DNA of 64,000 bases from Dimorphilus gyrociliatus (taxonomy: Eukaryota > Animalia > Annelida): positions 310,001 to 374,000 of the forward strand of contig CAJFCJ010000024.1 in NCBI GenBank assembly GCA_904063045.1. The letters run 5' to 3'. Each line of letters begins with the position of its first letter. Positions within the stretch are counted from its first letter, which is position 1. The translations under genes were made by a program, and so were the position numbers. The notes under the pieces are model-generated. The model did no database searches. It worked only from the letters and a program-made list of their open reading frames with translations, and was not told where the DNA came from. Below are positions 41,668 to 63,980 of the stretch, piece by piece.

Positions 41668-43244
41668 ATGGAGAGATCAATGACATCCGAAGAACTAGTT
41701 GGTTTATTATATTTCGAGAAAAATCCTTATGATTATATGAAATTAGAGGAACAATTAGAATATCATAGAAGTATGTGCGAATTTGGAAGTGAAAGAATTG
41801 ATCATTGCCCTCTGTGTTTTAAAAACTTAGACAAGGTAATTATCGTGGGTAATAAGAAAGTAAAAGTTTGAAACCTTATCTTTTTTAGCTACAAATCAAA
41901 TAAGGAAATAACTTATTTAGACTTAGAGTTGTACTAATTTTATTGAATTTCTGCTCTTTGAGAAATTGTATGGTTACTGCTCTTTCAAAAGAAAACTAAT
42001 TTTAATGTTTTTGGTATTAATGAACAGTTTAAAAAAACATGATTTGCTTTAACTTTAGTTTTCTGAAACTACTTGAATTCTATCTATAAGACAAAATTAC
42101 AGTAGTTCTGCATAAGATAGATATACACATGCTTATAAAAAATACACACACACACACGTTTGCAGCAGAATTTATAGATTTGACTATCCTATAGAATATT
42201 AATATTTATTAATCTGTTCAATGTTAATAAATTTTTATAGTATGCATCTTTTCCACTTGAAAACAGGAAGCACCAAAGTATATTCTCTCATTTATGGATT
42301 GTGCTAAAGGTGATCGTTTCATTTCTTGGATGAAAAATAAATGTGTATTTGGTTTTCCTCAATTTGAATCGATATTAAATCACTACGTTACATCATGGCA
42401 ATTTACTGAACTGCATCTTGATAGTTTAAAAAAATGTGGTGGAGAGAGTTCTATACCTATTGAGCTATTTACCCTGCAACATGTTACTTGGCTTTCTCTT
42501 AGCCATAATAATTTAGAGAGAATTCCTCCAGATATAGGTCGAATGGATTCATTAGAACATCTTGTTTTAACTGGTAATAAATTGGATGTAGCATCCTTAC
42601 CAAGAACATTGACTTTCTGCAGAAAATTAAAAACTCTTTTGTTAGATAATAATTTATTAGACGCCTTACCAGGATTTTTACTGTCAATGCCTTCATTGAT
42701 TACAGTACATCGACATGGCAATCATAATTATTTTAAATCCACTTTTATGTGGTATCATACAGACGTTAACGAAAGAATTTTAAAGGTGGCTAAAAGTCAC
42801 ACACCTCGATATTACTCCGCCCTTTCACTTCAATTTCTGGCAGCTCAAGCTTTAATATCGTCTCCAACCGAATATCTAACTGATAAAAATATTCCTCCAT
42901 CTCTGAAAGTGTTCCTTGCCGAATCCTTCAGACGTTTTAACATATGCGAACATTGTAAAAAAGCATTTTTAAAGCAAAGTGATGGATATAAAGTTATAAC
43001 ATTTAAGAATCCTTATCTCGGAAACACCTGTGTACCATTTGAACATTGGGCTTGTAGTCTAGAATGCTCAAGAGCAATAGAAATACCAGCGAGAAAGGAA
43101 CAAGTAGAAGCATCTAAAAGAGCTGATAAGGAATACGAAAGAAAAGTAAAATTTCACGAAAAAGACATTGGAATTAGATCTGGTATAAAACCTAAAATGA
43201 CTTATAAAAGAAAAGTCTCGTGTTATGCATGTACAACAATGTGA
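41668..43244 (+). CDS. Leucine-rich repeat protein, LRRC58/LRRC28-like, with BC-box/cullin-box-like segment and Cys cluster, about 381 aa
   Basis: Exon 1 41668-41835 (GACAAG|GTAATT) joins in frame to exon 2 42267-43244. About four LRRs (LSLSHNNLERIP, LVLTGNKL, LLLDNNLLDALP), then SLQFLAAQAL...IPPSLKVFL and CEHC...HWACSLEC, resembling the LRRC58-type C-terminus. Confidence 0.8.
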
Positions 43245-43466
43245 TAACGTTTTTTTTTCTTCTTTTTTAATGAAAAAATTGATAAAGTTATTCTTTAAAA
43301 AAAAATAACAATTGAAATTGAAAGAAAATGAACAAGTGCACTAAATAAAAAGTAAGATTGTTTTTGTTTACGGTAGATATTATAAGCTCTAAGTAATAGA
43401 TAGTACAAACAAGAAACCGTAATATATAATGCTAGGGCAAAGCAGTAACTTTATAAATTCTCTACA

Positions 43467-44509
43467 ATGCTACGTAATATGACTAAGCTTCTTTTTTTAG
43501 TAATTAATTATTTTATTCTGATTTAGGTCTTTTAATTTACTAACAAGTATTATATTGTTATAGATTTATTGTATTGCTGATATAAGTTTGTCAATTAGAC
43601 AAAAATATCATAAAGATATTGAAGGTAAAACTCTTCAACTTGACTGCAAATACTGCGCTCCTGGATTTAAAGTTCATAAAAAGTGTACGAATTCAACCGA
43701 TACAGTTTGTAAACCATGCGAAAATGGTAAAACATTCTCAGCGAGAAGGAGTTTAAGGCAGAGATGCAAAAGATGTAGCGAATGCATTTATCCATCAAGG
43801 GTAGTTAAGGAGTGTACAGTTACATCAGACACGAAATGTGGGAGATGTGATCGAGGTAACTTTTATAAAAACTTAATTGATTGTATTTCTTTTTCAGTAA
43901 AAAACGTTTCATTTTAGGATTTTACTGGAGTTACGAATACAATATATGTCGTCGATGCTCTTATTGTTTCTTGGGAAATCCTAATATTAGAGCTTACAAA
44001 CTGCATGCTTGCGCTCTTGATGGTATGCCAAGAAATTTTCAATGTATCCCTATTCGTAATGGACCTAAAGCTCCTATATGTTAGTATTTAAAATAATAAA
44101 ATGACAAAATTTGAAGTAAATGACACAATCGTTGAAAAAAACAGTTGATTTAAAGAAGCTACGAAAACTAGATAAAAGTGATGATGATAGAAAGTATGAG
44201 AGTTTCAGTAGTGGCGATGGAAGATATTTCCTGGACGACGATGAGGATGTGACACAAGAAGCATTTGAAACGCCACTAGTAAAGAGACGTCTTAAAAAAA
44301 GACATCTTACTGAGGAAAAATTGAATACCAATCCTGAAGGTTCCGTAAAAACTAAACAATTGATGCTGTTATATTTTAAAGAGGGTTTGTATCAGAATAA
44401 AGTTTTTATAATCTATCTTGCTGTAGTATTTAGTATTGCATTAATTGGACTAACTGCTCTTTGGTTTTCTAAATGCAAAAAGTTTAAACCAAAATTGCAA
44501 CTGAATTGA
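43467..44509 (+). CDS. TNF receptor superfamily member: signal peptide, about three Cys-rich domains, stalk, TM, 12-aa cytoplasmic tail (about 283 aa)
   Basis: Exons 43467-43499 (tentative), 43564-43855, 43918-44079, 44145-44509, in frame. TNFR CRD patterns: CKYCAPGFKVHKKCTNSTDTVC; PCENGKTFS...CKRCSEC...VKECTVTSDTKC; GRCDRGFYW...CRRCSYC...C...C. TM VFIIYLAVVFSIALIGLTALWFS. Confidence 0.88.
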
Positions 44510-44951
44510 TTTCCTGTTTCCTTTGACAACACAGCAACAAGTACTTGAATACTGAACACTTGCACACTAACCTTTAATACTCTCTATTTATATAATTGCT
44601 AGCCAAGTGTCTTTTCGGAAATAAACGTTCTAAATGGATATTCATAAAGTTTTTTTGATTTTCTTATGTTGTATTTTATTAAAGGAAAAAATTAAATACT
44701 TGATTAAACATTAAAAAACAACATCAAAAAACACATTTGCAGTATTACTAGAGCATAAATCATATTTTATAGTGCAATTGATGTCATCAATAAATAAGTT
44801 AAATACTTGTATATGTATATATAAATAGAGCATAAATACACTTTCAAAAGCAGCTTAATATTGTAATCACATCTTTTTTCATTATTAGATTTACAAATAA
44901 GCATAAATAGTTGCTGTTCCTATCAAGTATATTGGCTAGTGCAAACTTTAA

Positions 44952-45991
44952 TTATGCTAATTTGAATCCACCTAAAAAGGTTCGATCGGATGCTAGTTGA
45001 TATTTGCACTCAGCACTTACGTCTAAAGGTTTGAGATAAATCAAATCTCCTTTGCTCAGGTTAAATATTCCTTGATGACCAACTGTATCGAGTCTTCTTA
45101 CTTCTGGCGAACTACAATGGAAATGAATTGATAAATCATTTTAAAATTTGCGAAATATTTCTCATTTACTTACTCTAATATATTTTGAGTTCTCTGCGAT
45201 AGCATTAGCGTCTGTACGTCATTAGTTGAACTCCTTTTAACAGTTTCAACTGAACATGTTCGAACTTTAGCATACCTAACGGATTAAAATAGATGATATG
45301 ATTATATCAATTATGTTGGTTGGAATTGCAAACTCTATACCCAATAAAACCGGATACTTCTGTTTGAGCATACAGGAAGTAAATTCCAGATTTGAGTATT
45401 TGAATAGCATTTTCGTTTTTATTAAAAATCAAGTGTCTCGTTCCAGTAGAAACTTTTGGCTTGTCTTGCCATTCGAATCTCTGTCTTGGTTTCTTTGTAT
45501 ATTCCGCGTTGTTGTTGTTCTTTCCTATTTTTTTGGAAGAAAAGGGAAGGAAATTGAATATATAAATCATTCGCTTTCATTAATTATTTCAGTTCAGGAA
45601 AGATATCAGTAACAAAGCTATTGATATAATTACCTAAATAAACCCACTCTGAACCATTTTGTGAATCCAGGTGTATTGCGCTCATTTGGTTTCGTTTCGC
45701 GCCTCTTTTATTTCTTATCTTTAGTTTATAAAAATAGAGAAGCATGAGATAATAGATTTTTGTTAATATAACAATCCTTTAAGCTACAAATAAACATTAA
45801 GGTAAAAGTTAAATAACTACCAATGTGCTTTGCGGTGGCATAACTTTCAAATCGAATCTCGTCTCCAAATTGTTGTATTTCACATAGAGAAAGATACAAA
45901 AAGCAGATGGTACGAGAGCAAACAGGAATGCCAATAAAGACAATATTCTACTCAATGAGTATCTTGTCGTTTTCGTCGTTGTTTGGTCCAT
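44952..45991 (-). CDS. TNF superfamily ligand (type II membrane, furin site, TNF homology domain), about 225 aa, EDA/Eiger-like
   Basis: Exons 45991-45845, 45718-45634, 45524-45341, 45275-45174, 45111-44952, all junctions in frame. TM ILSLLAFLFALVPSAFCIFLYV, furin site RNKR, and THD strands SAIHL, FEW, IQILKSGIYFLYAQ, GHQGIFNLSKGDLIYL and TFLGGFKL-A-stop. Confidence 0.9.
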
Positions 45992-47465
45992 TATTCCAAT
46001 GAAAAGTTTTCCACAACAATGTTTCAGTTTGTTTAAAGTTTCTTTAGAAGTGTCGTTGTTGTGTTTGTAGTTTTCTCTACTTCTAACTTCTCTATATATA
46101 TACACGATCCCACCTAATGTGCATATTCATTATGTTCTGGGAAGCTACGAATTCAGCGAGAATTTGATCCACAATTTTCGAAATTATAGTATATTCAGAT
46201 TACAGATTTTCCTAGTTGTATTGCAAAAGATACCATTTAAGGAAAGTTTTGTCCTATCATTCACAATGTATATAAACAATAAAATGTGATGATAATAGTA
46301 ATAAAACCACAATAATTATAATCCCAGTGACTGTAATAAAGTCATATTTTTTGTTAATTATATTCTATGCCCAAAAGTAAACAGTATTCAAAAAGACTTT
46401 AATGATGGTTATAAGCATAGTATAATAGAAAATATGAAAGATTATTCACTTCCTTTAGGTAATAGAGGGAGGAAGCTGAGAAATAGATAAGAATACTTGC
46501 AGGAGGTCAGAATGAATTATAAATGTATGTTTGATATCTTTTATTACATAAAATACAAATAAAGTGGTTTTGGAGAAAACAAAAGAGCCTATTTTACATA
46601 TTTATTTATTAATTACGATACGATTGCATAATTATTAAATATGTGGAAAGAGATGAGAACGTGAAGAAATATTAGCTTTGAAATAGATAGTTAAATGCAT
46701 AATATACCATGTTCTTTTCCCTACAAAACACTAACAATCATTTGTAATGGCGTTTCTTTCTGTTATACTAATGTTATTATAGCTATTTATACTTAAAGAA
46801 CATTGTACAAAAGACGTATATATATCTATGCTATTGTTTTTTATCGTAAAAAAAAACTACTACAGTCTTGTAGTAAACGTAGTCCTATGATGGGTAGCTT
46901 CAATGGAAAGTCCCTTTTTCCCAGAAAGCTTTTAAAATTTCATACCAATTCCCCAAAACACAAAGACTTTCTTCAGATCTTTACAAGGACTGTTTAATGG
47001 ATTCTGCGTATTGAATGTCTTTACAAAAAGGATTTGTAAGGAAGTGTAATTTAAGATAAATTAGCTATAAACAAACTTTGTATGAACTTACAAACTCCCG
47101 CCAACAGATGTTTAAAGATAAGAAAAACTTATGCAACTTTTTAATTTCATTTTTCAATTTCTTTTTGATTTTTTTATTATTCAAAAATATAATAAAAAGA
47201 AAGAAAAAACATTTATATTCCAATATAAATACATAGTAATATATTTATATGTGTATAAATGACAAATTAATATGGTTTTCTTTTACGTTAGTTCAAATGA
47301 TTCAAAAGAAAAGACAGGATATGATATGAAAAGAAAGTAGAGGGTGGGGAAGGGAGGAAGGTGTGATATGAAGAAAATTCAACAGAGGCGGAGAGAGAGA
47401 GAGAGAGATAAAGAAATCTTTTCTTCTATCACCATTAAATGCAATTAGTATTGTACATTGTTTAA

Positions 47466-61196: not shown

Positions 61197-63980
61197 TTAC
61201 TCCGCTTTATTGGCTACTTCAGACAGATCTGGTACAAGCTCGTCGATCTTTTCTTCAGCCATTAGTTTCTTTTCCATTTGACAAAGCAAATTGACTCCAT
61301 CGACTACCTTTTGTACTAATTCTACTTCAGAAAAGCCTAACCTATCCAAGTTTGATATATCAAAAGTACCATCGGTTGATTCTGTATCAACTCCTCCAGT
61401 TCCTCTCTTTTGCAGCCTCAAATATTTGAGAATATTATCAAATCTGTCATCTTTGCATAGATTAGGTAATTTAACGTGTACGCCGGCTCTTAGACCAGTT
61501 CCGAGATTAGATGGGCAAGTTAAAACGTAGCCAAGATGTTCATTCCACATGAAATCATATCCTTGCTTCCTTATAGAACCCTCAACGAGTTTCAAACCTT
61601 CGCAGAATCTATCGAATACCAACTTCATATTTCCACCCTTTTCCATTGAGATAACCCTTAAGGAAACAATAGTTAAAATTATTATCCTGCACACTGAGAG
61701 AATAAGTAATCTGTTATATTTTACCTGGAGTGGTCTTCTTCATTAATCCAAACCAAAAAATTTTTATCCTTATTGTGGAATATTCCTCTGCCATCTGGCC
61801 AGTCCCTAGCCATTCCAGCGCAAGTAAGTAATGGAGAAACTGGCTTATCAAACAGGAAATGATCCGCAATAAGTTGATCTTGTTCTTTTTCTGTCATGCC
61901 TGATAATGGATAATATTTTCCCTTGAATTGCCCGCTCAAGCCAGAGAGCGCTTTAGTTAAAATTCTTTCAACTTCTCTTCTCTCGTGTCTAGTGCAATGA
62001 GGTGGTAAAGGAATAGGTCTTATCGAACGTCCAGTTCGGACACGAGAAGATAAGACAAGATCATTATCTAATTGACCATTCGTTATTTTCGATGAATCCA
62101 TATCAGTTGGGTGTTTTTTATCCTTTGTATAACCGTTATGACGATTCTCGATAATCGGATCCAGGAGATCCGCAAAGACTTCGTACGTTTCTTCGTCACC
62201 TGCTACCGCTCCAACTGTAAATATAAAAGGATGACCTGGATTGTCAACACCAGTCTGAATGACGCCATCCAGATTAAATCCACTCTTAGTTTTGGCATCT
62301 TTCAACTTTTCAAAAACTTCCTTTGTCAAGCATTTGGCCATCCAGTTGTTATGTTTGCTTAAATCTGGGAAATTGGATGCTTTAGGCTCGCACACTTTAA
62401 ATTCTGTAGCAATAGCAGTATTCTCATCTTCAGCTTCGTTTCTATAATTTTCGGGTAATAAATCGTCAAAAGATTTCTTTGCTTCGAGTCTCTTTTCGAT
62501 TTCAATCAATTTTCGAACACCATCCATTACTATTTGAACTTGCTGTACTTCGGATGTTCCAAGTCTATCCAAATTCGAAATATCAAAGGTACCATCTTTG
62601 GCCTCTGTATCAACACCTCCAGTTCCTCTCTTTTGTAAACGGAGGGCCTTGAGAATTCCAGCGAATTTACTGTCTTTTGCCAATTTTGGCAATTTGACGT
62701 GAACACCGGCTCTTAAACCTGTTCCAAGATTACTTGGGCAGGTTAATATGTAACCGAGATGCTCATTCCACATGAAGGAGTAGTTGCTTTTCTTGATGGA
62801 GTCTTCGAAACTATTTAAACCGGCACAGAACCTTTCAAAAACTCCCCTCATGTTTCCTCCTTTTTCCATGGATATAATTCGAGTATGATCTTCTTCATTT
62901 ACCCAAACAAGGAGATTCTTTGCATCGTTGTGGAAAATACCTCTTGCTTGGGGCCAATCTCTGGCCATTCCCGCGCATGTTAGCAATGGGGACACTGGTT
63001 TATCAAAGAGGAAATGATCCTCAATAAGTTTATTTTGTTCCTCTTCCGTCATGGTTTCCAATGAATAATATTTGCCAGCTAATTCACCCTGAAAAGAATT
63101 GCATGCCTCAACAACAAGAGTTTCAACCTTTTTCCTCTCTGCCCTGGTGCAAAACGGTGGTAACGCGATACCTTTTATCGATCTACCAGTACGGACTCTA
63201 GATGATAGCACATATTTTGAGTCTAATTCATCTCCTTCTAATTTAGTTGCATCTAGATCTGTTGTATGTTTCATATCCTTGGTATAGCCATTATGGCGTT
63301 TTTCAATGATAGGATCTAACAAATCAGCAAAAACCTCATAGGATTCTTCATCTCCAGCAACAGCTCCAACAGTCATGATGAAAGGATGACCTGGATTGTC
63401 GACACCTGTTTGTATAACTCCATCGATAGTAAAACCACTGCTAGTTTTCTTTTCCTTTAGCGAATCATAGATCTCAGGTGTGAGGCATTTTGCCATCCAG
63501 TTGTTGTGTTTTGAAAGATCTGGAAAATCTCCCGGTGGTCTTTCGACAATTGTTGGCCAGTGGTCGTCAATTGATTCACCTTTTTCCAAAGCCTTCTCAA
63601 TCTCAATTAGCGTCTCAACGCCATTGATAACTAATTGCACTAATTCGACTTCAGATTTACCAAGTCGATCAGCATTCGAAATATCAAAAGTTCCATCGGT
63701 AGAGGCAGTATCGACTCCCCCAGTTCCTCTCTTTTGAAGTCTGAGAAGTTTAAGTAATTCATCAAATTTGTTTTCTTTTGCTAAATGTGGTAATTTAACA
63801 TGCACACCAGCTCTTAAGCCGGTTCCGAGATTCGAAGGACAAGTAAGAATGAAGCCTAAGTGATCGTTCCACATAAACTCATGCCCCTGAGCCTTGATAG
63901 AAGCCTCAACCTTTTTTAATCCAGTACAAAATCTCTGAAAGACCTTTTTCATATTACCAGATGACTCCATGGAAATTACC
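61197..63980 (-). CDS. Multi-domain (at least three contiguous domains) creatine kinase, flagellar type; 5' part lies outside the window
   Basis: Exons 63980-61725 and 61656-61197; an upstream intron runs off the window edge. One C-terminal domain fragment plus two complete domains, each with [41 protein letters not shown], Wx[14 protein letters not shown] and GTGGVDT. The PFI Ile and GGV Val specificity-loop residues are those of creatine kinases. Confidence 0.93.

Follow-up and report, generated by a model that had tools for sequence, protein, structure and literature searches.

As a rule, the genes for TNF ligands and those for their receptors (TNFRs) occupy separate loci. This is the case for the TNF ligand and receptor genes of the fly, and the vertebrate genes for decoy receptors adjoin other receptor genes, not the gene of a ligand. 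Ligand and receptor genes do stand side by side at the SCR/SRK genes of the plant S-locus and at the pheromone/receptor loci of basidiomycetes, and it is this placing of the genes which causes matched alleles to be inherited together. These are highly polymorphic recognition loci at which binding has been proven, whereas the pair of genes described below, from the annelid Dimorphilus gyrociliatus, is a candidate singled out by gene adjacency. The premise of the original prediction, that the loci of TNF ligands and their receptors are separate, fits the literature that was searched, which gave no report, for any animal, of a TNF gene next to a TNFR gene, and no description of the TNF system of D. 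gyrociliatus. In the accessible part of a paper on TNF and TNFR in Anopheles, the two genes are not described as adjacent (PMC9646898). Within the invertebrates more broadly, Wengen-type receptors are widespread (bioRxiv 10.1101/2024.07.27.603686), and TNF ligands and receptors of another annelid, Capitella, have been paired by AlphaFold-Multimer in a preprint (10.1101/2024.07.27.603686).

The D. gyrociliatus pair lies on contig CAJFCJ010000024.1 of assembly GCA_904063045.1, within a window of 64 kb, which is the whole stretch of DNA that was analysed. A 21-kb piece of the contig record agrees with the window at every base, and from this agreement the window was placed at bases 300001-364000 of the contig. 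In it, a TNFR-superfamily gene on the plus strand (43467-44509) and a TNF-family ligand gene on the minus strand (45991-44952) stand tail to tail. Reading of the sequence bears out the coordinates that had been proposed for both genes, in that the receptor runs from an ATG at 43467 to a stop codon ending at 44509 and the ligand from an ATG at 45991 to a stop codon ending at 44952, and the distance of 442 bp that had been given between the stop codons is exact. This spacer (44510-44951, assigned to neither strand) holds both 3' UTRs, as seen from the sequence together with transcript contigs, which end inside it at 44563 for the receptor and at 44739 for the ligand, ~175 nt apart. The domain content of the genes on both sides likewise agrees with the claim that the neighbours are unrelated to TNF or TNFR: on the receptor side these are GDI, PP2A-like phosphatase and LRR genes, and on the ligand side RabGAP-TBC, BACK-Kelch and Ank-SOCS genes. 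No second copy of a TNF or a TNFR gene is found within the 64-kb window. The contigs of one public transcriptome-like run show six of the seven introns of the two genes to be spliced exactly as modelled, and the presence of both mRNAs in one transcriptome assembly amounts to expression, not co-expression. The introns at the locus are short (62-109 nt) and the G+C content of the window is low (~31%), both of which agree with the compact genome published for this species (73.8 Mb, 14,203 genes and a median intron of 66 bp; PMC7854359), for which neither operons nor trans-splicing are reported (PMC7854359).

The ligand gene is made up of five exons, all on the minus strand, which together encode 233 amino acids that are letter-for-letter those of the public protein DgyrCDS13195, itself encoded on the same contig of the same assembly. 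Exon 1 (45821-45991) contains, from hydropathy, a short cytoplasmic N-terminus and a type II membrane anchor at approximately residues 16-38; exon 2 (45634-45718) contains the stalk, a furin-type site, RNKR, and the start of the TNF homology domain; exon 3 (45341-45524) the N-terminal strands of that domain (…FEWQDK…GIYFLYAQ…); exon 4 (45174-45275) its middle; and exon 5 (44952-45111) its C-terminal strands, the ending ...TFLGGFKLA and the stop codon. Each of these exons has its splices confirmed, since a transcript contig spanning 44739-46061 skips all four introns at the modelled splice sites. Upstream, a TATA-like box (46093-46102, minus strand) lies ~35 nt from the 5' end of this contig at 46061. 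The full-length protein, exon 4 included, matches the TNF profile PF00229 over positions 2-127 of 127, with E=8e-10 and a score of 39.2 bits (cut-off 23). Taken alone, exon 3 corresponds to profile positions 2-39 and aligns to CD40L and TRAIL, and exon 5 to positions 84-127 and aligns to APRIL. The TNF homology domain occupies residues 103-232, and the sole strong hydrophobic stretch of the protein is that at residues 16-38, which gives the type II topology; between the two, a motif scan places the RNKR site at residues 59-62, in the stalk. The TFLGGFKLA ending is a motif typical of the TNF family.

The best PDB sequence matches of the ligand are to TRAIL (E=0.008) and then APRIL, its ESM Atlas language-model features score 0.91 to TNF clusters, and its ESM Atlas model (pTM 0.60) has TM values of 0.72-0.73 with EDA-like and APRIL clusters. 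(The domain was also modelled by AlphaFold from the single sequence, but the result, with a pLDDT of only 39, was set aside.) DgyrCDS13195 is, in other words, a genuine and expressed type II TNF-family ligand. It is also a very divergent one, since an exhaustive search with the 60 amino acids of exon 3 against 1.84 billion representatives gave no relative at E<=0.001, returning the ligand protein itself together with an unrelated repeat protein of 4046 amino acids, and a word search with the full-length ligand found itself only. Two scans of metagenomes, made with both proteins, gave no relative. Word-index searches with ligand exon 3 and with the exon-2 stretch of the receptor were likewise empty within the length range that queries of exon size can reach, which stops short of full-length proteins, so that no orthologue of either gene was retrieved.

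In its overall design, DgyrCDS13195 is akin to the furin-shed TNF ligands (EDA, BAFF, APRIL and, by sequence, TRAIL), with which it shares a type II anchor, an R-x-K-R site in the stalk and a C-terminal TNF homology domain with a hydrophobic FLGxF-like end. The tetrapeptide at which human BAFF and EDA are cleaved is likewise RNKR. Unlike EDA, however, the D. gyrociliatus ligand has no collagen stalk, and its two domain cysteines, C154 and C216, have no obvious match to the disulfide of TNF-alpha. The position of the RNKR site ahead of the TNF homology domain makes release of a soluble ligand by a furin-type protease probable. The ligand would thus be made as a type II membrane protein, be cut at RNKR and probably be set free as a soluble trimer, where both shedding and trimerisation are what we infer from the sequence.

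The receptor gene, on the plus strand, is modelled as four exons encoding 283 amino acids. The first (43467-43499), predicted from the sequence, supplies the ATG and the first 11 codons of a signal peptide. Exon 2 (43564-43855) contains the remainder of the signal peptide, the first cysteine-rich domain (CRD1) and most of CRD2; exon 3 (43918-44079) contains the end of CRD2 and, from the map of its cysteines, a partial CRD3 with four of them; and exon 4 (44145-44509) contains, from hydropathy and composition, the stalk, the membrane span, a cytoplasmic tail of 12 amino acids and the stop codon. Introns 2 and 3 are spliced in the RNA contig exactly as modelled, confirming the junctions 43855/43918 and 44079/44145 and hence both flanks of exon 3. 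Exon 2 matches PF00020 (TNFR_c6) in two stretches with E=9.6e-13 and 48.8 bits (cut-off 29.4), and its PDB matches are to human CD40 (E=1.4e-11), ELR1, DR6, HVEM, p75NTR and TNFR2, the receptor being closest to CRDs of the CD40, p75NTR, DR6 and HVEM type. The cysteines fall into groups of 6+6+4, which is to say two full CRDs and a partial one, with all 16 CRD cysteines in canonical spacing. Beyond them is a highly charged stalk of 96 amino acids (21 K/R, 18 D/E), followed by a clear membrane span at approximately residues 249-271 and the basic tail (KCKKFKPKLQLN). Neither a death domain nor a TRAF-binding motif is present in this tail, and exon 4 has no Pfam domain of any kind.

With 12 residues of tail that contain neither a death domain nor a TRAF-type motif, the receptor by itself is expected to bind but not to signal. 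The nearest parallels in this regard are the decoys TRAIL-R3/DcR1 and TRAIL-R4/DcR2, which similarly hold a CRD ectodomain at the membrane and have neither a TRAF-binding tail nor a death domain that functions. In DcR1, however, the anchor is GPI, and in DcR2 a truncated death domain is retained, whereas the D. gyrociliatus receptor has a true membrane span with a basic tail, and its charged stalk is unusually long. A decoy function for it is putative. A second comparison is with Drosophila Eiger and its receptors Wengen and Grindelwald, where an invertebrate TNF ligand is again accompanied by receptors of the CRD type; Wengen and Grindelwald, however, have one CRD and signalling tails, unlike the two to three CRDs and missing tail of the D. 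gyrociliatus receptor. The product of the TNFR gene most likely binds some TNF ligand, perhaps DgyrCDS13195, either as a decoy at the membrane or as a binding subunit. With two and a half CRDs borne on a long charged stalk, this predicted type I protein would hold its ligand without signalling; it might damp the ligand or act as its decoy on the membrane, or else form the half of a receptor complex to which the ligand binds.

What, then, is to be made of the adjacency of the two genes? Under random gene order, 0.01-0.03 adjacent ligand-receptor pairs would be expected per genome, an estimate which assumes ~5-8 ligands, 15-30 receptors and 14,203 genes, with family sizes that are unchecked, and which applies to an adjacency that was picked out post hoc. 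The arrangement is, on this basis, moderately unlikely to have come about by chance, but not extreme. Since it would be met in only 1-3% of random gene orders, pure chance is an uncomfortable explanation. The reading that we favour, with a little more than even confidence, is that these are two separate expressed genes which happen to be neighbours. In a genome as compact as this one, the adjacency then most likely came about by accident of gene order, or else it is a recent lineage-specific arrangement, and the TNF-TNFR pair is probably not a conserved module. Each gene would be driven by its own promoter on its outer side. Necessarily, a shared promoter is excluded, since the genes converge and their promoters lie on the outer sides; moreover, the upstream regions of the two genes have no k-mers in common above shuffled controls, and consensus sites for NF-kB, AP-1 and CRE are found in neither of them.

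One hint in favour of a module comes from the 3' ends. An exact 13-nt motif on the sense strand, CTCTATTTATATA (equivalent to CUCUAUUUAUAUA), is common to the 3' regions of TNF and TNFR, with P ~0.003-0.006 when set beside simulated as well as real pairs of sequences; the contig of the receptor breaks off 19 nt before the copy of the motif. Moreover, of the four copies of AUUUAUGCU in the whole window, three are in the ligand 3' UTR (213 nt), at intervals of 71-77 nt. It may be observed of these 3' motifs that they are AT-rich sequence in an AT-rich genome and were found post hoc. In vertebrates, TNF mRNA is controlled by AU-rich elements, and the common 13-mer could be a sign of joint post-transcriptional control of the two messages.

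It is against this background that the principal alternative is to be weighed, namely that the two genes constitute a cognate module. According to this alternative, which we consider possible if somewhat unlikely, the receptor would bind DgyrCDS13195 as a decoy, in cis or in trans, or as a co-receptor, and linkage would keep co-adapted alleles together; coordination, which forms part of the same tentative proposal, would come about via a common chromatin neighbourhood or via 3' UTR elements. The closeness of the genes, with 442 bp between them where so few such pairs are expected by chance, argues for such a module, as does the retention of intact CRDs of the ligand-binding type in a receptor which is missing its signalling tail, although the adjacency was chosen only after it had been seen. 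Similarly, both mRNAs occur in the same transcriptome assembly, but the genes converge and have separate promoters with no motifs in common. The three AUUUA-containing repeats of the ligand 3' UTR, and the 13-nt sense motif common to both 3' regions, are also in keeping with coordination, but the 13-mer consists of AT-rich sequence, and its copy on the receptor side lies beyond the end of the receptor contig. The narrower proposition, that the neighbouring receptor is the partner of DgyrCDS13195, has in our estimation a chance of about one in three. A stronger version can also be put forward, in which the genes are a co-evolving linked pair whose tail-less receptor sets the range of the furin-shed ligand, or presents it or acts as its decoy, and whose messages are co-tuned through AU-rich 3' UTRs; this we regard as doubtful.

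The remaining alternatives concern the integrity of the receptor gene, and turn on its 5' end. For the signal peptide to be in frame, a 64-nt GT-AG intron at 43500-43563 must be removed; its donor reads GTAAT, its branch site TACTAAC, and its AG acceptor is rich in pyrimidines. The sole RNA contig over the receptor gene reads straight through this intron, such that entry of the receptor into the secretory pathway stays a prediction, and the same contig carries on via a spacer of 222 nt into the LRR gene upstream (41680-43244, plus strand). This LRR gene, which lies outside the pair and has an open reading frame of its own, with no exact counterpart on record as the public model differs, is fused with the receptor in the public annotation of GCA_904063045.1, where a single 637-aa gene covers 41680-44509. 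Were that model correct, the TNFR part would be the C-terminal half of an LRR-TNFR fusion and there would be no free-standing TNFR gene. The model has in its favour that it was called by the NCBI annotation, with matches to both LRR and TNFR_c6, and that a single RNA contig passes unbroken from the LRR gene into the TNFR. To yield the 637 amino acids, however, every canonical combination of splices has to cut out the LRR stop codon (43242-43244), the spacer and the signal-peptide exon with one intron of 346-367 nt, and this fusion intron is unsupported, since over just this stretch the RNA contig follows the genome without a gap. Such an intron would also be long in a genome whose median is 66 nt (PMC7854359). 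Moreover, a fusion with no signal peptide would leave the disulfide-rich CRDs in the cytosol, the LRR part resembles cytosolic LRR proteins of 300-400 amino acids that have no TNFR part, and a canonical signal-peptide exon with its 64-nt intron lies directly upstream of the CRDs. The unsupported intron, the absent signal peptide and the TNFR-free LRR look-alikes together argue that the public model is a false fusion, and its correctness is, in our view, very unlikely. The 637-aa model looks like an annotation artefact, in which two genes that lie close together, with overlapping transcripts in the assembly, were joined; the receptor is read as a separate gene.

The same unspliced contig could be taken to mean that the TNFR is decaying or non-coding, that is, that intron 1 is retained and that the main transcript encodes an upstream open reading frame of 19 codons, making the gene effectively a pseudogene. 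With the intron kept, the frame which opens at the ATG at 43467 does indeed stop at 43524-43526, and the one contig that covers the intron still contains it. Exons 2-4, however, remain open across two correctly spliced introns, all of the CRD cysteines keep their canonical spacing and the membrane span is intact; the contig itself can be explained by overlap with the 3' UTR of the upstream gene, and assembled contigs drop minor variants. A decaying or non-coding receptor gene is, in our view, likewise very unlikely. Two loose ends in the read layout close by, at 43250 and 43269, fall at a T-run, have no match in the window and were taken to be cross-matches of the assembly. A viral or foreign origin was rejected, the base composition being level across the window and the introns of the host type.

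Returning to the reading of two separate, expressed genes, both encoded proteins are ordinary members of their superfamilies. The stand-alone reading of the receptor is slightly better than the public annotation, where the receptor is hidden, and because it is hidden in a probable false LRR fusion, surveys of the proteome would miscount or misclassify it. The TNF systems of invertebrates are large and the pairing of their ligands with receptors is almost wholly unmapped. If the adjacency marks true partners, the locus would offer a ready-made and testable pairing of a ligand with its receptor, in a miniature annelid that is tractable to work with. The two genes would be the first linked TNF-TNFR module to be described for any TNF system, and would give a shortcut for matching orphan invertebrate TNF ligands to their receptors.

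The receptor (TNFR-superfamily) gene (43467-44509, +) and the gene for the 233-aa type II TNF-family ligand (45991-44952, -) converge, and the 3' regions of both contain one and the same sense motif, CUCUAUUUAUAUA, at 44582-44594 (+) and 44818-44830 (-), respectively; the former copy may fall within the receptor's 3' UTR. The two genes share it in the same sense because on the DNA it forms an exact 13-nt inverted repeat lying between convergent genes. When judged against simulated and real sequence pairs, sharing of this kind has a probability of P ~0.003-0.006. The 3' UTR of the ligand also contains three copies of ATTTATGCT, sense on the minus strand (44752-44760, 44829-44837 and 44900-44908), out of only four in the 64-kb window as a whole. 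Each of the three includes AUUUA, and the spacing between copies is 71-77 nt. These copies could be an AU-rich regulatory element; alternatively, they could be a small local duplication.

Elsewhere in the ligand gene, the strand-rich part of exon 3 (45341-45524, -) is matched at 23 places, with 30% identity, by P0002, a T/V/S-rich repeat protein of 4046 aa encoded outside the window. This match is read as repeat-driven, and P0002 is not counted as a relative.

No gene is called in the 1.4 kb that separate the TNF promoter from the RabGAP-TBC gene at its 3' end (46062-47465), a stretch which is unusually long for the compact D. gyrociliatus genome and within which the regulatory DNA of the ligand may be located. 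Further along the window, a 749-aa ORF (61721-63970, -) with at least two N-terminal and at least two catalytic ATP:guanido phosphotransferase domains is a gene of the contiguous-dimer arginine or creatine kinase type, in one long exon.

With regard to the receptor, its first intron (43500-43563, +) has canonical signals and is kept unspliced in the sole transcript contig available, which also extends into the upstream LRR gene. This retention could come from the assembler merging overlapping transcripts, or it could be genuine intron retention or read-through. As publicly annotated, GCA_904063045.1 has a single 637-aa model (41680-44509, +) that joins the receptor to the LRR gene and whose product requires an intron of 346-367 nt that is contradicted by the RNA contig. 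The model is probably, therefore, a false gene fusion, and as it stands it conceals one TNFR from proteome surveys.
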